A stretch of DNA of 64,000 bases from Fimbriosthenelais zetlandica. Its lineage: Eukaryota. The position numbers were made by a program, and so were the translations under genes. Under the pieces are notes generated by a model that searched no databases, was not told the DNA's origin, and saw only the letters and a program-made list of their open reading frames with translations. Location: positions 12,958,001 through 13,022,000 of the forward strand of contig OZ365113.1 in NCBI GenBank assembly GCA_977030845.1, in the 5' to 3' direction. Each line of letters opens with the position of its first letter. The stretch's first letter is position 1. Below, piece after piece: positions 44,755 through 64,000 of this stretch.

Positions 44755-45465
44755 TCCCGCGAAACCCACTCACCCACAAACGCACGCCCACACACCATAA
44801 AGGATTGATGATGGCTACTGGAGCCGTCACAAACACCTAGTAAATGTAACAAAATTTACAATCATGAATAATAATAGATTTTAAATTATTTTCTCACAAA
44901 TTTAATTTTGGTGGAATGAGCAAATGACCCATGTTGTTTCAATGAAGAAGTCATTTTTGTTGACAGTTGTGCGTGATGAGAAAGTTTGTAAACTTTGAAA
45001 GTCAGAGAAACATATTTAGTGCGTTCTCATGACTAGTGATTATAGAGTCGGAGGGTAGGAATGAATCCAGGGTTCAGGTAAAATGTTCAGGACCGAGGAC
45101 AACTAATTAACTGTTTTAGATTATTCGAAAGTGAATGTGACGTAGTACGAGGGGTTGTTTTCATGCCTTCTCTGATTAAATGGTATCGACTAACAACAAC
45201 TTAATTCAGATAAAACGGCGAAAATGTGTAGCCTAACCAAAATGTCAGCACAAAGGAGACCAGAAAAAGAAAAATCTCGGTTATCAGAGATTAAACATCG
45301 GGATTTCCCTGTAGACTTAGAACCAATATTCGTCCCATTGATCATGTACGCCTTTAGCTTTATGTATTATTCCAACCATAGGTAACTAAATAAATTACAT
45401 GTACAAGCAAGGTAAAACCCAAGACATGGAAACTGAGGAAAGATTAGATTATAAGACGTACTTAC

Positions 45466-45583
45466 CTCATTTTCACGTTGGGTAGGCTAAACGTGCTGCT
45501 GGTCCTATGTGTTGCTCATATCGATGGACGGCAGACGATGGCTATGGCTATGGCTATGGCTACAATAAGGATCGTGGAGATAT
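45466..45583 (-). other. Probable non-coding 5' leader exon (118 nt) of the minus-strand gene, containing (ATAGCC)n
   Basis: Acceptor ttttattttcag| and donor GAG|GTAAGT; GC-richer than flanks; no long ORF. Confidence 0.65.
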
Positions 45584-46629
45584 CTGAAAATAAAATTTAA
45601 AAAAAATCGTTATAGATGTGTGCCGATAGAGCAAAACCAATGTATGGCTACCGGTAAAATCATTTATAAATCTATCACAAGGTAGACTTATCACTAATTT
45701 ACAATACCGGTATGGGATAGACCTAGGCCTACTTGAAACACGTTACCGGTAGACTACCGGTAATTTTTTTTCGTTTTCATTTTTACAGTAGCCTAGGCCT
45801 ATTACCCAGACAGTAGGCTACCAGGTAGGCCTACTTAGCTTAGCCTAGGCTACTGTAGGCCTACTTTATAAAATTCAACATAGCAATGCCTAACCACAGG
45901 TTTTTAAAACATTAGTGGCGACCTCTCTTTGTTCAGACATGAACTAGATTTATAAGCCGTTCACGAAATCTGCCTGTCTTTGAATTCCATCTAACGGTAG
46001 AAAATATAACCTATTAGCATTTACTATCCTTGCTATTAAGGCCTAGTATACCCCCTAAAATTACTTTAAAAAATTAAACGAATATAATTTTCAATAGCAA
46101 TAGACTCTTTAAGGAGATATAAATTAATATCGGTATATTGAACCTAAAATTAGGCTAAATACAAATTTTAAATCAAGCCTACAGTCTTAACATAAACTGA
46201 TAAACGAGTAGAACTATAATGGTTACGTACTCTGCATTCAAAATATACAGCAGGCATTAAAATAATACAGATAGATCTATAAGGCTCATCCTCAGGCTCA
46301 GGACTCAAGACTCAACTTCAATTTGACATGCCAAATTCAATGTCAGAGGTAAAGTTGATATTCTTGGACAAATGTAGATCCTTCATGCCAAATCATTAAA
46401 GGTGTTGACAATATACTGACAAGTACTTGTATCTACTTTAAACAGGTCTAATAATATGCTAACTGTTACTTCAATGTACGGTAACGTTTAGAGTTGGACT
46501 TGGAGGGAACTCACCAATAAACATAAAACAACACTGCATCACCCCGGCGGCCCCATGAACAGCGATACATATTGGTCATTGCTCGTTACATCTGGCGTAA
46601 ATGAATTAAAATATGCGGTCTATACTCAC

Positions 46630-46800
46630 ATCTGTCATTCAGCGACAATGTTCACAATGTTTAGTGCGATAATAATCCAGCTATGCCACTTATTATTACA
46701 CGCAAACCGGGTACACTCGTGAAGGGTTTCCCCAACGGAAGTGCCATTAGGCTCCGGGCATTGTGGGTAATAAAAAGAGTAGGATCGTCTGCATGGAAAT
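46630..46800 (-). other. Possible first (leader) exon of the minus-strand gene; 5' boundary approximate
   Basis: Donor GAT|GTGAGT at 46630/46629; CpG-containing sequence upstream; no good acceptor seen. Confidence 0.4.
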
Positions 46801-47307
46801 TCTAGGCTTTGTTTCAAAGTGTTACGCTATTTATCATCACTTTTGAATAGAAAATAAACAAAATATACGACCACTGGTTGTCCCTAAAAGCGTTCGAACA
46901 TATCTGACATTTCTTTTTGGTATAGAAACATAGTAATTGCCTATAACCCCTATTATCGCTCACAACACTTTTAGTTTCAGATTTACTTGCAAGGTGGCAT
47001 AAGCTACCGGTACCGTAACTTACTTTCCCGCCGGGCTTTCCTAGAGACATGATTGTATGCATATACAAAATAACATGTTTCACTTTTTTCCAAGAAAGAT
47101 CAAACAAAAATAGGCCAGATCTATGCATATAGACCTGTTAGACGGTAGGCCAAGGCCTAGGGAGGGGTCATTATTTTACGGCCGGGGTTGAAGTGTGTGT
47201 TGCATAGGCCTACCTGGATGATTCGTTGAGGACAGTCAAGATTCCCGGAATTAGGCTACATTTATCGCTCTCTAAAATGGAGAGCGCCCTGCATCTCCAG
47301 TGTAAGA

Positions 47308-47380
47308 CAGGGCCGTAGCCAGGGGGGGGGGGGGGGGGGGGGCTAAAGGGGCTGCAGCCCCCCCCCCCCCCCCCCCTTAC
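47308..47380. repeat. G21 / ggggctgcagcccc / C19 fold-back, likely part of a dispersed non-autonomous repeat (with the ggggcttcgccccctgggcccc segment near 47896-47917)
   Basis: G-run 47322-47342 complementary to C-run 47358-47376 around a palindromic core. Confidence 0.55.
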
Positions 47381-47404
47381 CAAAATCAAGTAAAGTTTTT
47401 TTAA

Positions 47405-47585
47405 TGTCCCTCGCTTGACACTCAGCAAAAACAGGACAGTAGGCTACTAGGATTGGTCAACTCAGTGTCAGTATATATGACTGTGTGAGGTCCATGTCAT
47501 GTGCCTGTGATGTGATATGCCTACCCCAGTGAAGGATACCTCAGTGAGACATCACTATAGAGCATTGGGCTCACTGTCACAACTA
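47405..47585 (+). mobile_element. Degraded SINE-like fragment (central domain); shorter antisense pieces at about 48437-48490 and 48690-48735
   Basis: cactcagca...ctaggattggtcaactcagtgtcagtata...cagtgagacatcactatagagcattgggctcactg resembles, from memory, the conserved core of widespread invertebrate tRNA-SINEs; the segment gcattgggctcact recurs in reverse complement twice downstream. Needs a Dfam/Repbase check. Confidence 0.4.
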
Positions 47586-48258
47586 GGTAGGCCTAGGCCT
47601 ATATTACCGCCTAGATCGAGATGTTCTAACTCTATCCACTCCCTGCGCTCCCTCCTGTTTCATTTCTTTCCTATAGACCTAATCCACACCCTTACCGTGC
47701 CCCTATATAAGGCCTACCCTCCATTCCATGTCATTCCCTTCCCCGGCAATGCTCCTCCCCTCCCCCTTGATTTTCTGCCCCTCTCTGGGTTACCACATGT
47801 ATACGTCAGAAAAAAAAATTTCATAGGGGTTGACAGAGAAAAGTGTCCAGAAATGCTCTTAAAAATCCCTCAAGATTCTGAAGCCATGAGCTTCCGGGGG
47901 CTTCGCCCCCTGGGCCCCCACAAGGGACACTGTCACTGGCCCCCAGTAGGCCTATGCCTATATAGGCTCCTAAGGCGGCACCCCAGGCGATTCTAATTCC
48001 TGCAGGAGGTTTAATTTTCTTGTGGTAAACAATAAATAATCATAATTCTAAGTTTAGGCCTACTGACATAGTGCGTTACTCTAATCTATTTTGAAATATC
48101 AAAAATAGGCCTATAGAACATAGATTGATTGGAGAAAACAATTTTATTAAGGGCAACCAAGTGTTGGTAAGGGCGACCATTGATTTATAGTAGCCTAGGT
48201 CGCCCTGCTGGCGACCAGGGTAGCCTATTTTACTAAATTTAGGGAGCCTGGACCCCTG

Positions 48259-48735
48259 CAATAGGCCTACCTAGGGCTAGGCCTACTATTTTCAGTCATT
48301 TCAATTTATGCCCTTTATGTTCAAATACCTAGTAAACCCCCGCTAGGCTAGTTCACAGGCATCAGTAATTTTCTATCCCAGGTGCTGGGAAATCACATCT
48401 CCGGGCTTCTAGATTTCAAAATTTTTCAGTTATCATGTTAGTGAGCCCAATGCTATTCTATACTGCTGTCTCATTCAGGTAGGCCTATCATGCCACCAAT
48501 AGGCCTACCTAGGGCTAGGTCAACTATTTTCGGTCATTTCAATTTATGTCTCTATGTTCAAATACCTAGTAAACCCCCGCTAGTCGAGTTCACAGGCATC
48601 AGTCATTTTCTGTCCCAGGTGCTGGGAAATCACATCTCCGGGCTTCTAGATTTCAAATTTTTTCAGTTATCATGACGGTGCCTATTTGTGTTAGTGAGCC
48701 CAATGCTATTCTATACTGCTGTCTCATTGAGGTAG
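48259..48735. repeat. Tandem duplication, 238-bp unit, about 94% identical plus a 16-bp insertion in copy 2
   Basis: Copy 1 48259-48496 and copy 2 48497-48735 align directly by eye. Confidence 0.92.
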
Positions 48736-48886
48736 ATAATCATTCAGTCAGACGTCAGTCCGAAAGATTTCTGGATGATTTTGGTGCTTTCCTATAATGT
48801 AAAAATAAAATGCTGAGCGATGCCCCAGGACTAGTCTGGTCAGGGATGGTCGATTTTCCTTGGTCTGGCTATGATAGGCCTACAGT

Positions 48887-48972
48887 GCAGCCACCTAGTG
48901 TTTACCTTGTGCATCGAGAGTGAACTGAGCTCCGCCGCGCCTTTACTTCAGCGGTAAACCACCAGGTGCCAG
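48887..48972. promoter_or_regulatory. Divergent pair of CTCF-like motifs
   Basis: Minus strand ACACTAGGTGGCTGC (48901-48887) and plus strand CCACCAGGTGCCAG (48959-48972), compared with the core CCACYAGGTGGCAG. Confidence 0.35.
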
Positions 48973-50300
48973 CACTGTTTCTAGTCGCTGAGTGCCCAGG
49001 GCCAAGCCGGTTAATGCCGGCGTCGCTAGGAATTTTCAGACGGCGTTTGTAGATCTATTAAAGCACCTAAATCAGACAGAATTGAAATCAGTTGGTAAAT
49101 GTACATGGAAAATCTATTGCATCCAAAAGAACAGAGCTACGCTGCCTGTAAACTTGTAAACGGCGAGAGAAATTATAAGTGAGCGATAATAGAGGTTTTG
49201 GCAGATCCCGCCCCAGAACGAGCATTGACCGTCCAGTGGCTCCCTCGCCACCTATACGGCAAATGAAGGAACTAAGATAAGAGAACTTTCTCCCCTATGC
49301 GACTACCCCACCACCGGCAAAAGCGGGAACTAATGCTCAATGCTAAGTGAATGGTAGCCATTGATAATTCATAATTATTTACAGGGCACCCGCCCAACCA
49401 AATTTGTCTAGGCCTACCGGTACTTCACGTTTTCATAATTTATAGGGTTTTAGCCAAGGCATTGTTTGTAATTTCAGCCCATGCATGTTACTGTACGAAA
49501 ATTTATTTTGGGCGGCAGGGTGCTCGCCATTCAGTTGTAAATTCTTTGGGGATGGATAAGCCTATGTTTTTAGAGGGTGCACTCTATCTTTCAGAGCGCC
49601 CGCCTTATAGGCCTATGATGGCATTGATAGGCTATTACACAAAATTACTTTGGGGGTGCTCTGAAAAAGTTTGCAGGGCGCTCGCCTGAATTTTGCCGGG
49701 TGGTGAAGATGAGATTCCGGATAGGCCTATCTTGACTATAATGGATTCGTCCGACAAGTGGCTTTCCATGTTGTTCTTAGCCTAACGGCTAACCTCCTCC
49801 TTTTCGGTGCCTGGTCAAGTGTGGTAGGGGCAGAGTTGCGCGATCTGGAAGAAAGGAGCGAAGATAATAATAACACAATCTACAAAATGACGAAGGAAAA
49901 GCAATCATGCTAGGAGGCCTAGGCCTAACATAGAAATGTGTTATCATAAGCCTAGGCCTATATTAAAAATTAGACTAGGCCTAATTATTTGTCTAGTAGG
50001 CCTAAGCCTACATAGGCCTAAAAGGAATTAGACTACGGTATCAGAAATGTTGTGTTTTCTATCACACAAGTTTCATCAGCTTAGGCCTAATTAATTATAA
50101 GCATAGGCCTAATCCTCAATTAAAATCTCATTGTTTTTATTTTGCGCCCTTTATATTAGAACATAGACATAATTCTATGTCTATGATTAGAACTGTAGTG
50201 TAACTGCATAGGGAGATTCTTTATGTTGGTAGTGCCTACCGGCAGGTGCCGCCACAGTGCTAGGCCTGTATGAGAGCGTTGTAACGGGTGTGCGCTTTGA

Positions 50301-50309
50301 ACCGGAAGT
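50301..50309 (+). promoter_or_regulatory. ETS consensus site, probable core promoter of the zinc-finger gene
   Basis: ACCGGAAGT exact match about 380 bp upstream of the inferred start codon. Confidence 0.45.
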
Positions 50310-50688
50310 CTATGATCCATGTTTACTTTCATCCCTCCACCCTGTGTAGGCCCAGATTACTTGACAATTTCTGGATTAACGTCACCTCTCACTTAGTGGG
50401 AAATGTTCTGTTAATACTTGATCATCTTCTTGTTCACTAATTCGGATCTGAATGTTTTATATTTTATAACGCCAAACTAGGAAGTAAGAGATAAGAATAA
50501 GATCCTGTTTTAACTAGGCTATGGCCTAACCCAGGCCTGGGCGAGAGTGAAAATTGGGCCATTGGCATTGACATGGTTTCTGATAGTTATGTAGTAGACC
50601 TTCTCATTAGACATTACCAAAGGTGACACCAATGTCTACCAATGGTTTGGAACTTTTGATATCGAAAGAGGAATAATTATTTCACAAC

Positions 50689-50722
50689 ATGACTGGAACA
50701 TCGATGTCCCAACCAGATACAG
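50689..50722 (+). CDS. Zinc-finger gene coding exon 1 (MTGTSMSQPDT, phase 1)
   Basis: ATG in acaacATG; donor CAG|GTAGGC; phase joins exon 2 in frame; acceptor ttctcattag at 50610. Confidence 0.6.
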
Positions 50723-51220
50723 GTAGGCATAAATCTAGTATTATTTAATTATAAAATGTCAAATTAAAACTTTATTTATAAATTATAATATTAGCTGATC
50801 GTAGTGCTGGGATAAAAGCTAAAGACAATAGGCTTAATGTGTTAGAATAGCTCCTGAATAGCTAGGCCTACCGGTATATTTCTGGACCTGTTTGGACTTT
50901 CAAGCATTATTGCTACGTAGCCTACGTAGCCTAGAACTACCAATCTAGACTTGTGATATTATTGGTAAAATCTTAAGCTGATCTAGGCCTAATATAAGCG
51001 GCTTAGCCATTATAGCAAGGCCTAATAATAATATGACAAGGCCTATAAATATAATCTGGGTCCAGAATATATATACGGTATAAAACTACAATCACAATGT
51101 AATGTCTAGGCTTAGGCTATAGACTACTGATACTAATAGTACGGTAGGCCTATGCCTACGGGTAGAAGTTTCTCACAGTGTGAATAACATACCACTCACG
51201 TTTTCTTTTCCTCTTGCCAG

Positions 51221-51322
51221 CTCGTGACACCATGGACCATGTTGTATGTGGTTCGTGTGGAGAAAATTTTGGCCTCGCCAATCTACCGGAATTCATCCAG
51301 CATAAACAGAACTTTTGCCAAG
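51221..51322 (+). CDS. Zinc-finger gene coding exon 2: CCHC finger of BCL11A ZnF0 type (CGSC-x14-H-x4-C)
   Basis: Strong acceptor ttttcttttcctcttgccag|; donor AAG|GTAATA; 102 nt, phase 1-1; DHVVCGSCGENFGLANLPEFIQHKQNFC has the spacing of BCL11A [28 protein letters not shown]. Confidence 0.9.
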
Positions 51323-51480
51323 GTAATAGACTCACTACTATATGTGATTCGATCACCTACTATACGAGTACACTAAAATAGTCTAATTCAATCACCTACT
51401 GGTAAATTTGACAGACAGATAATTCCTTTGTATTTTCTTTAATTACAAAGTATAATTTGTATTCCTTTTATTCTTCCCAG

Positions 51481-53610
51481 GGATAGGAGCAAAACAGCTG
51501 ATGTGCCAGTCATGTCTGCAGAAGTTCTCTTCTCCGTGGGGCCTCCTTCAGCACGCCCAGTCTTCCCATTCATTAAAAATTTTCTTTGGGCAAGGTACGA
51601 AGCCCTCTACCCTCCAATCAGATCCACAGAAATCCATGATTGTCTTAAACAAGTCTAAATTCAAAGTTCCTAATGGGGACCAAGCTGTGGAGGTGAGTAG
51701 TCAGACCTTCCCTACACCCACAACTACTGTCAACCAAGTGATTACTACATCTACAGTGGCAACAGTGACCCCTGGGAAAGCACCTGCACCAACCAACATC
51801 TCTGGTAAATCAAGTCAGGTCACTCAGACTGGGCCGCCTTCTTCCTCCTCTATCAAAGTCAACACTAATTCAGTTGTTACCAATTCACAGAGTGTAACAA
51901 CTAATGCCATGAAAGTTGTCCCTGTGGCGGAAAGGTCAAGAACAGAGACAACTGCAGTTTTTACCATGTTACCTCATATACCAGTCCTGCAGCCAATCAC
52001 ACTTCCTCAGGGAGCAATGTTAGGAGCCACCCTGGCCCCAGGAACCTTGACGCCCAGGATCATAGCTTATAATTCAACCCCAAGACGTCCTGATGTAGCA
52101 AGCCTGGAAAAGAATGTTAAGATAGCTCCTAAACCTACAGCAAAATTAAGCTTTGATTTGACGCCTGGGAAAGCACCTGCACAACCAGTCCACTTGCCCA
52201 CCACAAACTTGGCCTCTACGATTGACTCTCCTTCTAAGGTTCAGTTTGTTTCCAAAGAAATTACCCCTGTTGCTAGACCTCCGGAAAAGAATCCTACAAG
52301 CAATGAACACCCTGTAAGTGTACTTCTGAAAGAGAAGCAATTACCAATCGTGCCTTCGACTCCAACCCCAGCTGAAACAGTACCAAATGAAGATGTGCTT
52401 AAATCAAATAAAGACCTTCCTGTTGCGTCAGAATCAAAACTACCACATGCAATTGTCCTTGCACAGCCAAGACCAGTTCAAAGCCAACTTGTACCTAGGG
52501 TGAGCAAGACTAACTCATGTCAATGTTGTGCTAGTGCTGAAACCTCTGTTTGCCCATGTGGACCAATAAGCCCTCCACGCAAAGAATCAAAATCTTCTTC
52601 TAAACCAGCTAAGCTAGTAGGCAGTGATGAAAGTCAAAATAGTCTGAACTTGGATGGTGACATAGTAAGCACCTCTGATCTGTTTAATTCCACTATTGAA
52701 TCACATGAGACAGAAAACCCTAGTCCAGAAGGTGAGAGCCCAGAGAAGGAAGGAGAAAAGGAACTTTCAGAATCAGAAGATGGAGTACAGTGTTGTAACA
52801 ACCAGGACTGTGGAGTGACCATTATGCCAGGAACTCATGAACGTCTCAAGAAATGTTGTAATGCTGTTGTTCCAAAGAAGCGCAAGCGACATATGGAAAC
52901 CAAACACCGAATCAAAAAGCGTTCCGTAGAGGCCTCCTATACTCCAGAAGAGAACACTATTTATATTGACTTCCAGACTAATTCAGATGTTTCTTGTGTT
53001 TCTGGTTCTAACCCAGGTGTGACAGTGAGTGCTGATAACTCTAGCAGGACTATCACGGTGAACACCAGCACTGCCTTGATGGAGCCAGAGTCGATGATAA
53101 GAAACCAGAGTCCACAGTCTCTCACCCTGTCTATACCCTGTTACACCAGGAAGGCACCATGCTCCCTTCTTGGACGACAGAGACCCGTCAAGCTTCCACC
53201 GGACCAGGCTCAGGATCACATGCGGGGCTGTAGATGTGAATGTTGTCCTCTTGCACTACAACTTCTCAACTCAGTGCGGGACATTAAAACAAGGCGGCGG
53301 TCTGGTAGCAGTGAGGGGAAAAAGGATGCGGCTCATACAAAGGATCATACAAATGAGGAGTTAAGACAGATCATTGCTAATGTTAAAACGGAGGATCTAT
53401 TGTCAGAAGAGAGACCGACTGAGGAGAGTGGAAGGAGCAAATCAGGAATAAATAGACTAAAGGCCATGAAGAAGTCATCATTGATGAAGTCACAAGCTTC
53501 TATTAATAAAAAGAGAAGGTATCCCACATCCAAACCGTTTAAATGTGACCAGTGTGATCATGCATTTAATCAAAGAATTCACTTGAAGAAACACCAGAGT
53601 AAACACACCG
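51481..53610 (+). CDS. Zinc-finger gene coding exon 3: BCL11 ZnF1-like C2H2, long S/T/P-rich region, Cys clusters, basic NLS-like motifs, first C-terminal C2H2
   Basis: 714-codon ORF; CQSCLQKFSSPWGLLQHAQSSH resembles BCL11A [22 protein letters not shown]; acceptor ttcttcccag|; donor CCG|GTAAGA. Confidence 0.95.
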
Positions 53611-53718
53611 GTAAGAAATGTATTGTAGATACATGTTTTTGCTAATAGAGCTCTACATGTAATTATTTTCTTCAATTTGGTTCTACTCGCATTTCATGAA
53701 TATTTTATAACGTTTCAG

Positions 53719-56921: not shown

Positions 56922-58166
56922 CTAGGATGGTGGTGAGGTATGTAGGTTTGCTCTGGCAGAGGAGTGTTTCTTGTAAGATATGAGATATGTGGATGTACAG
57001 TCGACGCCGTCCACGTACGAAGTCCTGATGTCAAAGTATTTCCCATGTCTTGTCCGTGAATGAGAACTCCCTCTGGACGTCTCCCTCCATCGAGCATTCT
57101 GGCGTCTTTTTCTACAACAGACGCAAACTGTATCATATAAGACATCTCTGAACTGTCCGCCTACAGTATAATACAGGATGAAATTACAGGAGAAATTGAT
57201 GACCTGTAATAGATTGGCTACAGCTCGCACTACTAGAAAGTGTTCTATGTGTTTGTGATTGAGGCGGACGATGTCATGTAGGAAGTCCATGATCTGGCAG
57301 GGAAACACCAGAGTTATGAACATGACTACGATGAGTATTAAGGTTAAGGTGATTTTAGCACTGACTCCACTGTGTATTCCATGCACATGGCAGCGTCTCT
57401 GCGTTTGTTGTGAGTTCCTGAGGGCTTTGATCAATAAACAATTACAAACACTAAGAATAAAGGCTGGTATGATGACGCCCAAAACATTCCTCACCCAAAG
57501 ATAGCTGAGCCCCATGTCTGTGTTCAAGTCGAGAAATCCTATATCCATAATGGTATATGTAGCGTTATTCATAATGAACTTCCTGGCCGAATACTGACAA
57601 AAAGATGGTGCATTAAGGATGATACAGGACGCTATAGTGATGCCATAGATCACACGAGTTCGTGCCTTGGAAAGGATGAACCTGGCCTTCAAGGGGTGGC
57701 AGATACCTACATATCTAAATATGGACAATATAACAGTAATCCATGTACTAACAAGGATAAATGTGGTTACCACACCAGTACCATACATCTGGTAATAAAA
57801 GCTGAAACCTCGATAACGAAACAGAGATGTGGTGTCTGAAAGCATTACTGGAGCCCTTGGGAATATGGCAATACAGAAGAACATGTCAGACAATGCTAAT
57901 AAGATCATGCCCAGAAGTGCGATGCTTTCTGTCCCGTCTGCTTTCATTTTGGATCGTGTCCTTACTCGAACAAGAACGATCAAGCTGATGAGGTTGCCTA
58001 GACAACCAAAGACACTAACTGTAGGTGTGATTATGAGGTATAACATGTCCTGGATGAAAGTTTCAAGCATTCCATTTTCCTCAGACTGGAATGTCTTAGG
58101 ATCACTAAGGTTTGTGAACAGCTCCATTGTAGAATTGACCGTGGATGAATTGTCGCCGTCTGCCAT
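56922..58166 (-). CDS. Class A (rhodopsin-like) GPCR, FMRFamide/sex-peptide-receptor-like group, 414 aa, uninterrupted CDS
   Basis: Seven hydrophobic segments; TM1 GN, TM2 LALSD, TM3 FRYVGICHP, TM7 NFILY, helix-8 FR, C-terminal CVCC; N-terminal sequons NSS, NST, NLS. Confidence 0.95.
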   Translation of the reverse strand: MADGDNSSTVNSTMELFTNLSDPKTFQSEENGMLETFIQDMLYLIITPTVSVFGCLGNLISLIVLVRVRTRSKMKADGTESIALLGMILLALSDMFFCIAIFPRAPVMLSDTTSLFRYRGFSFYYQMYGTGVVTTFILVSTWITVILSIFRYVGICHPLKARFILSKARTRVIYGITIASCIILNAPSFCQYSARKFIMNNATYTIMDIGFLDLNTDMGLSYLWVRNVLGVIIPAFILSVCNCLLIKALRNSQQTQRRCHVHGIHSGVSAKITLTLILIVVMFITLVFPCQIMDFLHDIVRLNHKHIEHFLVVRAVANLLQVINFSCNFILYYTVGGQFRDVLYDTVCVCCRKRRQNARWRETSRGSSHSRTRHGKYFDIRTSYVDGVDCTSTYLISYKKHSSARANLHTSPPS

Positions 58167-58270: not shown

Positions 58271-61200
58271 AGCATCAACATTATAGTACATATTTATTGG
58301 ATATATTATGTAAACTTCATTGAGAAAACCTGCGAAACTAGTGACACATTGTAAATAATATTCATCCCAATATATGGACGACTGATCAATATTCATCTGG
58401 AAAACTGAAGCATTTTAAAAAGCACATCTATTTTGACTGCGTGTAATCATTTGTTCTTACACGACAGAAGAACCAATAATGAAAAAGCTACTTCCACAAA
58501 TGATGCCTACATACCAATAGAGAGATTGCCTTTCTACCATCACAGTACATTATGCAGTGAGGACAGTATATGTCTTTTGAAGCTTAGCAATTAAGATATT
58601 GATGAATTTCATCTATGTCTGTCACTGTGATTACACATCTGCTCAGAGACTTCAGACTCATTTTGCGAATAGTAGCAACACTGCAATTTTATTAGGCCTA
58701 GTATCATCCGACGTATAAAAGACAGATATTGGATTACCACCATGATGGAAGTTCTCTTTTCCATGGATTATATCTAGAACGATTGTTAATTATGAGTTGT
58801 CCATTCCCCCTTTTTGGTCTGACCAAGAGGATACAAATCAAAGCAGTAATGGTGATGTTACTCCTGAGGCAGAAACCGAAATATAACTCAATGACAGTTT
58901 ATAAAGCCAGGTCCAGTGGCTGGTTTAGAATGGATCAGCAGGCCCACTGAATGAAAGCAGGGAGCACGGATCTTCGCCATCAGAATCTTGGTACCTGACT
59001 CCTGCACACTATTATCCTTATCAATACCAGTTTTACAGAAGGGCAATTTCCCACCAAGATTCGACCAATTAAGCCTTGATGAATTCGTCTGGGCTGACCT
59101 GGCCTTGACAACTTTCTACCGCACGCTTGTATCAAAGGGCCAATTGGCCAAGAGCCGCCAAATCTCATGTTGTTGGCACCATGAATCAGGCGATTTAACC
59201 AGTACCACATGAAGAGGGTCCAGGCAAGGGGAGGCAGGTCAATAAATGTGGGTGGATATGTATTGACGAGGCAATAAGGTTAAGGATGCCAGTATGTCAG
59301 CTGTTTGGCAAAACTACTCGGGTAGACTACTTTTTCACGCCCCATTTAGTGGGTAAATTCCACCATATGGGACCTGGCTAGACATTGATTTGTTTAGTTT
59401 GCAGAAGTAACCAAAAGACTACAATGCATAAATGTATCATGTCTTGCATAAACTGATCTAAGTTTGCATCAGTCTGATCGATGCATTCACGAATGACCGA
59501 ATTGATCATGCAACACCTTGAGGTAATGATACGATACTTTTGGGGGGCAATATACAATATTTCCTGTCGGGAACAGGATACCGGATAGGGCATGCAGTGG
59601 CCAGTGCAACAATTTTGCTTAGAGGGTCATTCAAGCAAGAAGCATACAGTCTTGACAGAGTGTATGACAGGGTTTTTTTCTGAAGGATATTCTGACTGTT
59701 ATCTTGTATATGTGACAGGGCTTTCCAATCAGGAAATCTTCAGTGATGAGTTCTTTCTTCCTCCTCCTGACTTATTCCATTTATCCTTGAAGTTGAAGGT
59801 TTTAGAGGAGGTAATTAATGGAATTGCATTTCGATTATTTTAGCTTTTTAATACTTGGAACCTTCCCCTGTGATGTTTAATGAGCCCGGCGTTAATAAAA
59901 GTTCCCTGTCACTGGAAATGTCATTGGCCAGATTGAAAAAAACACGACCTCATTTCAAAATGATAAATTAATTTATTGGGTTTTGCAGAAATCTTACGAA
60001 CGACACTACCACCCGTATTGTTTTTTACCTGCTGATAACAGAAATATCTGTAACTAGATACAGTTGTCTCCCATAGAAAACAAGACCCATCATTATGATT
60101 CATGGAAAATGACAAAATGTTATTTTCACTGTTATCACAAAATGATAAAACGAGTCACCCCATATCAGCAGCTTGAGTGTCCATGATTCCCGCAATGTTT
60201 TGGCCTGTATCTGAGAAAGTCATTAAGTAGGCACCCCGTTTGACTACCGGTATTAGGCTAAATATTTGATCTTTTCAGATAATATAAGTTGCACGAATTA
60301 TAGTTAAATGGCCACTGGAACCTAGCCTTCCATGTAACTTTCCAGATCTCTAGACCTGTCAGTAGTTTATTTCATTGTATTGCTCTTATTCTCCACTATA
60401 TTTGTTCTTGTGGTCTCTGGGCGACCTGCTTCTGCTTGACTCGGAGTTAATGGGCATATCATGCCGGAAGGATTGTCTTTTTATTACCGCGTAAATAAGA
60501 CGCGGATGGGAGATTTCTTCCTTATATGTTGAAATTGAGCTTCAGGGTGTGTTGCAGAGGAGATGTACATAATGATGCGTAATTCCTGTTATGTGGCTGT
60601 GTTTTGTTTGTCTAAGGTCTATCCTTTCTTTCTGCATTAATCATGTTTATACCGCCTCACTGCTCTCTCTATAAGGCTCTTAATGTGATTGTAGGGAGAC
60701 CACATGTGAACGAAGTGTGTTGTAATGCACCTGTCGAATCTTATTCGTGATGGAATGAACAAAATTAATTCATTTAACTTTGTTCAATATCAGCATTATG
60801 GACCATTTTGAGCATTAATATTTAATATGCGGCTTGAAGGTGTTCATTTGAAAGGAGGAAACCGTTTAAGGACGAACTTCACCATTAAAGAGCAGACCTT
60901 CAGCTGCCCGGACATGACTTTTCCATTGAAAAGCTAAAATTGCCAACATGAATCCTGAGAGAGTGGAGAAGGTGATTTGAGCACAGTCCACTCAGGGCCT
61001 TACAGCTAACCATCAATAGGTGATAGTAATATGCGGGGTGGGGTCGTACTTCAATTACGATCAATATATATATTCATATATCAACATATTACATCCAATT
61101 CAGACCAATATGACATTTTTAATGCTGGCTTGGATAACACCTCCTTATATTAGTTTTAAAGCTATGCAACAGGTCTTATACACAAATTATTTGCTGACAC

Positions 61201-62419
61201 CTTATCTGAGCCGACACACATTAATTTGAAAGGGCATTGGGTTGGACATATATGAGAGTGTCGGGTAGAAATCCCCTTGGCTACGCCCCAGTATAATTAT
61301 TACGTTGAAAGGGAAATCAAAGCTGGAATACACCGCAGGTGAATGGATACACGTAAACACATTCTTTCTACTTGAATCTAGACTTGACAACAATATAGTG
61401 AAATGAAATGGAGAAAATGAAAAGATAAAAAAAACTCTGCGTGCAGCTCATATATATTTCCTGTATGAGAAAAGTGACTTTCAAAGTGAATTCTAATATC
61501 ATAAATCAAGTTAGGACTCACCTTAGACTGGCTGGATCCTGCAAAATATGCTGATATCAAGGAAAATTCCAAGTGGAGCTGGATTCACCTTTGTAGAAGC
61601 AAGGCTAGTAGTATAGCACACTGGTTCTGTCTTTCAGCGCACGAATACTGAAGGACCTGGTGAAAAGCTGATGAGACACCAAGCATTGCGTCACTGTCTG
61701 TCTGGCCAATAGGAAGCTCGCCAGTACTAAGGGGCTTAAAACCATGCAGTGCTTTATATATGATGGTCCTCAGGAGGCTTGCAGGTTTCTTCTATTAAAT
61801 TATAGAGAAAACTTTTTTATTCTTTTTCCTAATACCATTGGTAAAGTACTCGAGAAGGAATTTTTTTCAGAGGTCGTTTTTATTCTGGATCCCTGGGATA
61901 ATATACCCTGGTCGTATAACACTCTTCTATTAATTGTTCACGTTCCAATGACTGCAGTTTGATACAACTCATCTGACATTTGTTGCTTCTTAGCAATCTC
62001 AGTGGGAACGTCAATATCAAGCATATTATTCCGGCACCTTGTGTTCACTTAGGCCTGCTGGGTGAAATAAACATTTCCATCTTAGTCTTCCAGGAAGCCA
62101 TTGAAGATGACATTGGACAATTAAAGGTAATGGATTGGACATGTACAAGTGACGAAAATCCCAACTCGAGATTCATTGTGGTGGTATTTCTTCCACTTAA
62201 TCATCACACGTGGAGTCAAATGGTATACTTTAAAATACGTTTCAACTTCAGTCGTGTTCAATCAATTTGTTAACTTAACGGATGGACTGTGATTTAATAT
62301 GTATTGATAATTTCATCGCGGGGGAATGGCATCTCTTTTCCCATTATATAATGACAGTATCGTACCATATTCATATATGTTCAATAAGCAAGTTATGGGT
62401 GACAATTGACATAATTATA

Positions 62420-62784
62420 GGGCTCATCCACTAGGTCGCAAGGGGGAAGCGAGCAATGGCGATCAGTGATCACTAGCGATCAAATCGCTCAATATTTAGA
62501 ATGTTTAATATTTTGTGCGATTAATCGCATTTTTATGATCGCATGTAGCTTGCGATCCAATCGCTTATATGGATGAACACCGGCGATCTGATCGCTTGTA
62601 CTGGCGATCAGGGGCGATCTAATCGCTAGGTACAAGCGATCAGAGGCGATCAGGGGCGATCTAATCGCCAGATAAAAGCGATCAGATCGCTGCCACCTCA
62701 TCCACACCTATGTGATCGCTTCGGATCGTTAATAGCACTGATCGCAAGCAATCTCTTGCCCCTTGCGACCTAGTGGATGACCCC
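62420..62784. mobile_element. MITE / non-autonomous DNA transposon, 365 bp, 26-bp TIRs, TA (TATA) flanks
   Basis: Left GGGCTCATCCACTAGGTCGCAAGGGG versus right CCCCTTGCGACCTAGTGGATGACCCC (25/26 inverted match); no internal ORF; about 17 GATC-centred internal repeats. Confidence 0.88.
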
Positions 62785-64000
62785 TATAAATATCTGTCAC
62801 CACAATCGGATCAAAAGTATGAAGTATTGTCCTATAGGAGATTGTTGTGACGGGTCCAGTTAGTCATTCTACGAACTAATCTATCAGTATTACGAGCTAC
62901 ACACTCATTGTCACATGAAATCTGATTATCTACGTGTATATATAGGAAATGATAATATTATACGGACATTCGTGATTAGAATACATATGTCTGAATATAT
63001 ACCATATAATAGCCTATACACAATTGCCAAACTGACTGAATATGTGTTGAAGCATCGAACAGGGTGCAGATCCAGGCTTGACAGGCTATATGCTTGACAT
63101 GAATTAATACCGTGAGCAACTATAGTGATGTTTGTCAATGTGTATGGAGATTGCATATGTATTCTAAGAAGTTTCAGTGAAGTTCTTCCCCCAAGTTTCA
63201 GTGAAGTTATTCCCTTGAATATCGTTGGATAATATAAACTACATTCTTGGCCCACGACCATATACAGTGGTCAGCATCTGAACCTCGTCTTAAATAATTT
63301 ACCCCTGTCTTACCCGTGATTACCACATGTCTTCTTATCAACCTCCTCATCTTTCCCTGCACAGATTTCCCACCATAATCTCTGTGAAGATAATCTCTGA
63401 TTCACGATCATGGATGTGCCTTTCTCTGAATCTATATTCCAAGCACCATTCCCTGATTATTCAGCGTTTAAATGACCATAGACATAATGTTCTTGATCAT
63501 TTTCATAAAGGTACATGGCAATAGCTTCGATCTACTCCAAGGTCATAATAGGATTAACCTTTTCCTAGCACCATTACCGTTCTGCTTTCCTACCCCTACC
63601 TCCTCAATTTTCCCTGCCACTAAGTAATGAGGGCTCTCTTCTCCAAATTTACCACCTACTATATCCTACCTTTATCCTGTGTGTCTGATGGTTTGGGAAG
63701 GTCTTTCTCACCTCTCTTTCCCGTTTGATCATTGTACACTGCTTGTCTGTCTTCTCAGGTCCAAATTAATCTTGGCTGGGATGGGATGAGTGGAACTTGG
63801 GTAAAAAGTTCATGAGGCTACCACGAGGGCTTTTTCCTCACTCTTACTTCGCGTCTATTCTCTTCCTGCTTTAACCACTTCTACTTACGAACACCCATTT
63901 AAGTCCAAATGTCAACTCCGAAGTGCTCAAAAGTCAAACCAGAGAATTTATTGAAAAACAAATCCCTGAAGATAGCAAGCAACCAGCAAGGTTGGCAACA

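Follow-up and report, generated by a model that had tools for sequence, protein, structure and literature searches.

Within a 64-kb stretch of the Fimbriosthenelais zetlandica genome, an interval of 5.5 kb is crowded with short palindromes that begin and end in TA, chiefly TAGGCCTA and TACCGGTA. The question raised by this locus is which process put them there. The stretch is referred to here as the window; it comprises positions 12,958,001-13,022,000 of contig 19 in a 447-Mb assembly, and window positions are counted from its first base. The crowded interval (45649-51153) is called the island, and it adjoins the predicted start exon of a BCL11-like zinc-finger gene. An original prediction, made from the letters alone, had offered two accounts of the island: a promoter-linked insertional process, or a code that marks promoters and is recognized by a protein. 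The analysis described below indicates that the palindromes are probably excision footprints left at TA dinucleotides by cut-and-paste transposons, and that the island probably arose from the regional preference of a donor class whose ends are GG and CC. The palindromes and their shortened forms are accordingly termed scar words.

Scar words in the window

Exact matches to TAGGCCTA, TACCGGTA, TAGGCTA/TAGCCTA and TACGGTA/TACCGTA were counted. For the two octamers, the recount reproduced the numbers originally given for the island: 28 of the 30 window copies of TAGGCCTA and seven of the eight copies of TACCGGTA were located there. Dinucleotide shuffles yielded means of 0.85 and 0.27, respectively, per 64 kb. 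It had also been stated that one copy of each octamer lay elsewhere in the window. This was correct for TACCGGTA (at 60245) and incorrect for TAGGCCTA, which had two outside copies (39910 and 58693). The one-base-shorter variants were as plentiful in the island as had been described (21 of 29 window copies), with inside/whole-window counts of 9/11 for TAGGCTA, 7/11 for TAGCCTA, 4/4 for TACGGTA and 1/3 for TACCGTA. Scaled to the available sites, there were 56 exact scar words for 528 TA sites in the island versus 11 for 4,356 TA sites in the remaining 58.5 kb. Two control palindromes of equal composition, TAGCGCTA and TACGCGTA, were absent from the island. Derivatives of TAGGCCTA with one mismatch numbered about 22 in the island, compared to 10 in the ten-fold larger remainder of the window; given their abundance, the scars have built up over a long period, with a mean divergence that is roughly estimated at ~0.09 per site since they formed.

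The words are dispersed and have no satellite arrangement, as had been claimed; the copies are not in register, and a repeat search of the island detected only one local duplication. With a mean spacing of about 100 bp, the two longest motif-free stretches (48875-49409 and 46477-47005) were unexpected. The former includes the block (48886-49400) that the words had been said to skip along with the exons, and the coding exons likewise contained no scars. In the scar-free block are three CCACC(A/T)AG(G/T)-type words, which resemble the CTCF core; the observed/expected (o/e) ratio of CpG was 0.77 in the 49-50 kb bin, and Rfam returned no match in the block. The gaps are consistent with selection against insertions in putative functional cores. 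The island was also considered as a clean unmethylated-island signature, a candidate that was ruled out because CpG o/e was raised only in patches (0.37-0.85). A short (GGCTAT)n microsatellite is found at 45541-45565, near a possible minus-strand splice donor (GTAAGT, 45460-45465) from which the putative divergent minus-strand gene of the original prediction may have been deduced.

Filled and empty TA sites

To learn the nature of the words, 28 copies of a dispersed ~1.4-kb repeat were aligned with MAFFT; one copy resides in the island, and the other 27 were taken from elsewhere. At many independent columns of this alignment, TAGGCCTA in some copies was matched by TA and a 6-bp gap in others. 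A single TA could be filled in different ways: the copy L009 had TACATGTA, L010 had TACCGGTA, L011 had TAGGCCTA, and L027 and L028 had TAGGCTA, with a plain TA in approximately 18 copies. Each scar word is a plain TA plus an insertion of 5-6 bp, and the insertional part of the original prediction is thereby supported in kind. The empty sites were plain TA dinucleotides in non-TWA contexts (e.g. GTAC, ATAC and GTAT), and the base T was rare (~7%) at position -1 of TAGGCCTA.

To these observations was added a catalogue of all minority insertions in the 28-copy alignment, for which the sites were not selected. Scar forms accounted for 14 of the 22 distinct 6-bp insertions, where TAGGCC, TACCGG and TACATG were dominant, and for eight of the 17 distinct 5-bp insertions, where TAGGC, TAGCC and TACCG were dominant. 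Ten of the 22 insertions of 2 bp were TA beside TA. In a 263-kb sample, TAGCCTA, TAGGCTA, TACCGTA and TACGGTA ranked highest in enrichment among the 64 TANNNTA words, and the octamers exceeded their order-2 Markov expectations by factors of 59 (TAGGCCTA), 17 (TACCGGTA) and 7 (TACATGTA).

The process that writes the scars was active recently, because one repeat copy (L018; G000:C21:19554695-19559034) has a private 19-bp multi-scar insertion, TATGCATAGGCCTATAGGCC, at alignment columns 214-232, while it is 99.3% identical to its sister copies (differences of 0.6-0.7%). Contained in the same insertion is TATGCATA, a TA-TGCA-TA word that would represent a fourth scar type with TG..CA ends.

Inherited and locally gained scars

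The repeat copy in the island belongs to a family of non-autonomous DNA transposons, of which at least 40 copies were scored among 1,966 first-look candidates (loci L002-L030). Other copies have 5-bp target duplications (AGCTA, AATTA and GGCTT). The family features a G-run/C-run hairpin near the 5' end, ~237-bp internal tandem units in variable number, and a mean of about eight scar words per kb. Rfam produced only sub-threshold microRNA-like matches on the hairpin of the window copy (47305-47394), which were dismissed as noise.

Five copies of TAGGCCTA in the window repeat (at 48055, 48106, 48262, 48278 and 48500) are also present in most other copies and were thus brought in with the repeat. 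In contrast, the scars at 47588, 47594, 48191, 48221 and 48480 correspond to plain TA or to nothing in 19-22 other copies, so at least five scars were gained at the window locus itself; the scar at 47947 was probably acquired locally as well. Two of these positions fall in a private 17-bp insertion (Table 1) that implies serial hits at one TA. Overall, 19 of the 28 island copies of TAGGCCTA were outside the resident repeat, and 23 were outside the inherited positions. Because only five of the 28 were inherited, no single repeat family accounts for the island. Rare insertions were also more numerous in the window copy than in any other of the 28 aligned copies (five, versus a mean of ~1.5), a modest sign that location may affect the scar load of a given sequence.

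Regional specificity and genome-wide distribution

The scars were next divided by the element ends that they would represent. GG..CC scars (28 inside the island, two outside) and CC..GG scars (seven and one) were distributed alike (P = 0.52). The CA..TG scars, i.e. TACATGTA, had a different distribution: none occurred in the island and 10 occurred outside, spread over 3988-55585 (Fisher P = 8e-8 compared to GG..CC and 3e-4 compared to CC..GG). Since the first two classes co-cluster and the third is found only outside, the island is specific to the GG/CC-ended donor class; it is neither a general sink for TA scars nor merely a region that tolerates them better. Dispersed copies of TACCGGTA also sit within TAGGCCTA clusters on contig 1. 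That two donor classes have hot regions in common argues for a regional property and against the chance residence of one element.

Genome-wide, there were 113,146 copies of TAGGCCTA (0.25 per kb) versus 2,970 copies of its reversed control, and TAGGCCTA constituted 63% of all sixteen TA-SSSS-TA words (113,146/179,491). It was the most over-represented 8-mer in a 185-kb sample. The density was uneven, and uniformity across the genome, which the original prediction had named as evidence against itself, was not observed. In the island, TAGGCCTA reached 5.1 per kb and exceeded the genome mean ~20-fold (Poisson P ~1e-26); in the rest of the window, two copies in 58.5 kb gave a density ~7-fold below that mean (P ~5e-5). 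Clumping was also evident in the first 835 kb of contig 1, where 35 gaps were shorter than 500 bp and 5.8 were expected; the maximum there was seven per 5 kb, and no place in that sample was as dense as the island. Control loci bearing transposases were near the genome mean (0.33 per kb). The double scar TAGGCCTAGGCCTA was found 2,800 times in the genome. Two minisatellite arrays with 40-bp and ~20-bp periods (C1:152134-152661 and C1:268955-269482) contain TACCGGTA, and raw genome counts of this word consequently overstate the number of dispersed scars.

Gene context and comparison with relatives

The first recognizable coding exon of the BCL11-like gene (51221-51325) encodes a BCL-11A-like CCHC zinc finger (PF25491, 36.5 bits, cut-off 27). 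Its ATG is in good context, and full-length homologues from Owenia and bivalves start 2-16 residues ahead of this finger. With the last scar (51145-51152) only ~80 bp upstream of the predicted start codon, the island is the immediate 5' flank of the gene, and it possibly includes an intron of the 5' untranslated region. The BCL11-like coding exons downstream of the island were scar-free. A G-protein-coupled receptor (GPCR) gene is located on the minus strand at 56922-58166; its 5' side (58.2-60.3 kb) is nearly devoid of scars, so some gene starts are not hot spots. A promoter link is plausible, although it is shown for a single gene; that portion of the original prediction was retained for the plus-strand BCL11-like gene only. 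Coordinates are collected in Table 1.

Table 1. Features of the island and of the adjoining gene (window coordinates)
Feature	Position	Strand	Remarks
Scar island	45649-51153		28 TAGGCCTA, 7 TACCGGTA, 16 TAGGCTA/TAGCCTA, 5 TACGGTA/TACCGTA, ~22 one-mismatch TAGGCCTA
Densest cluster	45649-45863		4 TACCGGTA and 4 TAGGCCTA; TAGCCTA/TAGGCTA chained via common TA
Copy of non-autonomous DNA transposon, ~1.4 kb, 3'-truncated	47308-48735	+	Terminal inverted repeat (TIR) CAGGGCCGTAGCC
Private 17-bp insertion	47586-47602		Two overlapping TAGGCCTA (TAGGCCTAGGCCTA); nothing in 22 other copies
Scar-free block in island	48883-49408		534 bp between scar words; higher CpG o/e; CCACC(A/T)AG-type words
Second dense cluster	49409-50111		11 TAGGCCTA and 1 TACCGGTA; many with A next (TAGGCCTAA)
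Final scars	50863-51152		At 50863, 50869, 50984 and 51145; end ~80 bp 5' of start codon
First recognizable coding exon, BCL11-like zinc-finger gene	51221-51325	+	ATG 51232; BCL-11A-like CCHC finger; at 3' edge of island
Large coding exon, BCL11-like gene	51501-53645	+	714-aa open frame; no scar words

Among named organisms, bivalves, Owenia and Lingula provided the best relatives of this BCL11-like protein. At the homologous loci of two relatives, there were no copies of TAGGCCTA in 6.3 kb and one copy in 22 kb (including 10 kb upstream), respectively. In one of these loci, TACATGTA was the commonest TA-NNNN-TA word. The GG..CC scars look lineage-specific, and their near-absence from both loci speaks against an ancient promoter code for the BCL11-like gene. 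A P-element-like transposase with TNP-like RNaseH and GBD domains was noted on a relative's contig (L066:5125-7188), ~3 kb 5' of the homologous zinc-finger gene.

Proposed mechanism and searches for a donor

The following scheme is the one that we consider probable. A TA-targeting cut-and-paste transposon would insert and duplicate the TA. On excision, the transposase would spare a few terminal bases by cutting the non-transferred strand within the element; sealing of the gap by end-joining would then leave TA, the terminal bases of both element ends, and TA. Ends of GG..CC would yield TAGGCCTA, or TAGGCTA/TAGCCTA after the loss of one base; ends of CC..GG would yield TACCGGTA, TACCGTA or TACGGTA; and ends of CA..TG would yield TACATGTA. 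With one scar per jump and a low copy number, scars could far outnumber donors. The GG/CC-ended donors would prefer regions such as this gene's 5' flank, probably because of open germ-line chromatin, and local re-insertion may reinforce the island. Exons and the ~530-bp core block would be kept scar-free, probably by selection. For the excision step, Tc1/mariner elements are the precedent: their transposases cleave the non-transferred strand a few bases in from the element's end, so that 2-4 terminal bases remain between two TAs after end-joining, as in the Sleeping Beauty footprints TACAGTA/TACTGTA (PMC6943129).

Transposases of the Tc1/pogo type were present (21 hits to DDE_3 and 47 to DDE_1), several with open frames. 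One Tc1 lineage (L031) and three pogo lineages (L051; L053/54; L055/58) were flanked by TA and had CAGT..ACTG ends, which explain the CA..TG scars only. PIF/Harbinger-type transposases (DDE_Tnp_4) were the most abundant, with at least 150 scored hits among 478 candidates (loci L037-L048 among them), most of them with open frames; because many copies were 98-99.8% identical over 3.5 kb, these families were recently active.

A number of results weigh against the proposed scheme. Neither 295 kb of scanned sequence nor 20 transposase loci of the Tc1/pogo type yielded a convincing TA-flanked element with matching inverted ends of the GG..CC or CC..GG kind; all of the Tc1/pogo lineages that could be resolved end in CAGT, and no TA|GG ends were detectable for the L032/33/36 family or at other DDE_1 loci. 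The mariner profile PF01359 gave no hit, a result that is uninformative on absence because it also gave none in any control genome. To our knowledge, Tc1/mariner elements are not noted for a strong promoter preference. The promoter link comes from a single locus, and the sequence sampled outside the window was skewed to one repeat family. The PIF/Harbinger-type elements that are so abundant here use target duplications other than TA (PMC4482050). Finally, a miniature inverted-repeat transposable element (MITE) in the window at 62409-62793, with ~50-bp inverted ends (TAGGGCTCATCCACTAGGTCGCAAGGGG), many internal GCGATC repeats, and a family of about 235 copies (~470 matching ends genome-wide), had the look of a donor (TA|GGGC..GCCC|TA); it was rejected, as the 86 listed flanks read C-T-W-A|TAGGG and point to a TWA target. 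The MITE fits the PIF/Harbinger or NuwaII type (PMC4482050). Among seven of its copies with both ends listed, four were flanked by TAA...TTA, with the center base inverted and not duplicated.

Three other candidates were discarded. The 94-bp palindromic TA|GGGCAATC.. element in L009 was single-copy; the TA|GGGGAGACCGGGGC.. element, also in L009, had a second copy (L002) that was without TA flanks; and TA|CCTCAGTGAGACA..TGTCTCATTGAGG|TA inside the 1.4-kb repeat was confined to the repeat context and is no independent element. A rare donor with few copies and many scars is plausible, since frequent cut-and-paste excision leaves more scars than copies. We tentatively raise the possibility that a transposon class that has escaped description, with TA duplication, GG..CC/CC..GG ends, a preference for gene 5' regions that sets it apart from the classical Tc1/pogo elements of this genome, frequent excision and a rare element behind more than 100,000 scars, is present, or was until very recently, in this spiralian lineage. 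Searches of the literature returned no relevant account of the motif or of genome-wide footprint landscapes.

Alternative explanations

Two alternatives concern the origin of the island rather than that of its words. Cut-and-paste elements often reinsert close to the donor site, and the words could be true excision footprints that piled up as one or a few resident elements hopped locally, with no general promoter preference. Double scars such as TAGGCCTAGGCCTA are of the kind that such hopping would leave, hot loci include many that look poor in genes, and scar content varies greatly among the flanks of the repeat copies. However, the GG..CC and CC..GG classes, which require at least two donor families, cluster together here and in several places on contig 1, and the wide range of scar ages (28 intact copies versus ~22 with one mismatch) indicates that elements returned again and again over a long period; we regard local hopping alone as unlikely. 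It could also be argued that the island is sequence delivered by motif-bearing repeats or small tandem arrays with no local process, as the resident family is rich in scar words, five copies of TAGGCCTA occupy positions common to most repeat copies, and TACCGGTA is known from minisatellites elsewhere. Most copies of TAGGCCTA in the island were nonetheless not inherited or lie beyond the repeat, only one local duplication was present, and private insertions interrupt the repeat copy. Moreover, even the consensus motifs of the repeat occupy TA sites that are empty in other subfamilies. By these sequence comparisons, delivery by repeats seems largely refuted already, and it is very improbable.

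The other alternatives deny that the words are transposon footprints. A host or domesticated nuclease that cuts TA where chromatin is open might, for example, write GGCC or CCGG there, the break being filled in by a templated or stereotyped route. The strong regionality of the scars and the failure of the searches to yield a donor would both be expected in that case. Yet three palindromic fillers (GGCC, CCGG and CATG) were found at one TA, the CATG filler matches the ends of resident Tc1/pogo elements, and no polymerase or nuclease known to us attaches a fixed tetranucleotide. The TA duplication and the paired 5-bp and 6-bp products are those of staggered cuts and end-joining (PMC6943129). Such a writing process is accordingly judged to be improbable. 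As for the promoter-marking code of the original prediction, the palindromes would be sites of a lineage-specific DNA-binding protein, selected near promoters and perhaps co-opted from scars. Palindromic octamers do suit dimeric binders, and the peak in density adjoins a gene start. Against this stand the occurrence of the same words at arbitrary TAs in transposon copies across the genome, the commonness of one-base-deleted and point-mutated forms (which suggests decay without purifying selection), the fact that the words avoid the likely core promoter block instead of marking it, the lack of the words at the homologous loci of two relatives, and the nearly word-free 5' side of the GPCR gene. 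The code is not supported, and a role for the words as selected binding sites is considered very improbable.

Relation to known transposons and significance

Excision footprints at TA thus being the favored reading, the scars may be compared with those of described systems. Like the footprints of Tc1/mariner elements (Sleeping Beauty, Tc1, Tc3 and Mos1), they have TA on both sides and a filler of a few terminal bases, and their products are one base apart (5-bp and 6-bp net insertions). Unlike them, the filler is GGCC or CCGG, which requires GG..CC or CC..GG ends. P elements, piggyBac and hAT elements favor gene 5' regions as insertion sites and avoid exons and core elements, a preference that the position of the island beside a start codon resembles. 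Nevertheless, P elements and hAT elements duplicate 8 bp of target and piggyBac duplicates TTAA and excises precisely, in contrast to the TA duplication observed here; a regional bias of this kind would be unusual in a family that duplicates TA. The TIRs of the PIF/Harbinger-ISL2EU-Spy (PHIS) superfamily often begin with G or GG, and its target duplications are TWA, AT, ANT, CWG, C|TNA|G or none, and never TA (PMC4482050). The present empty sites, which are plain TA in non-TWA contexts with T rare at position -1, are therefore unlike a PHIS footprint.

Footprints of this kind are usually described at single experimental loci. The scale is different here, in that one scar type, at 113,146 copies, is the most over-represented 8-mer of sampled sequence and is piled up ~20-fold 5' of a gene. 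For annotators, this means that the palindromes are not to be taken for regulatory motifs and that scar indels of 5-6 bp can confuse alignments of repeats and paralogues. If the proposed origin is correct, cut-and-paste transposons would shape promoter sequence here chiefly via their leftovers, germ-line breaks in this species would be sealed by end-joining and not by copying from the homologue, and scar density would be a historical readout of the landing preference of a transposon family. Should the more tentative suggestion of an undescribed donor class also be correct, scar fields would constitute a fossil map of accessible chromatin in the germ line, as well as a source of new promoter palindromes.

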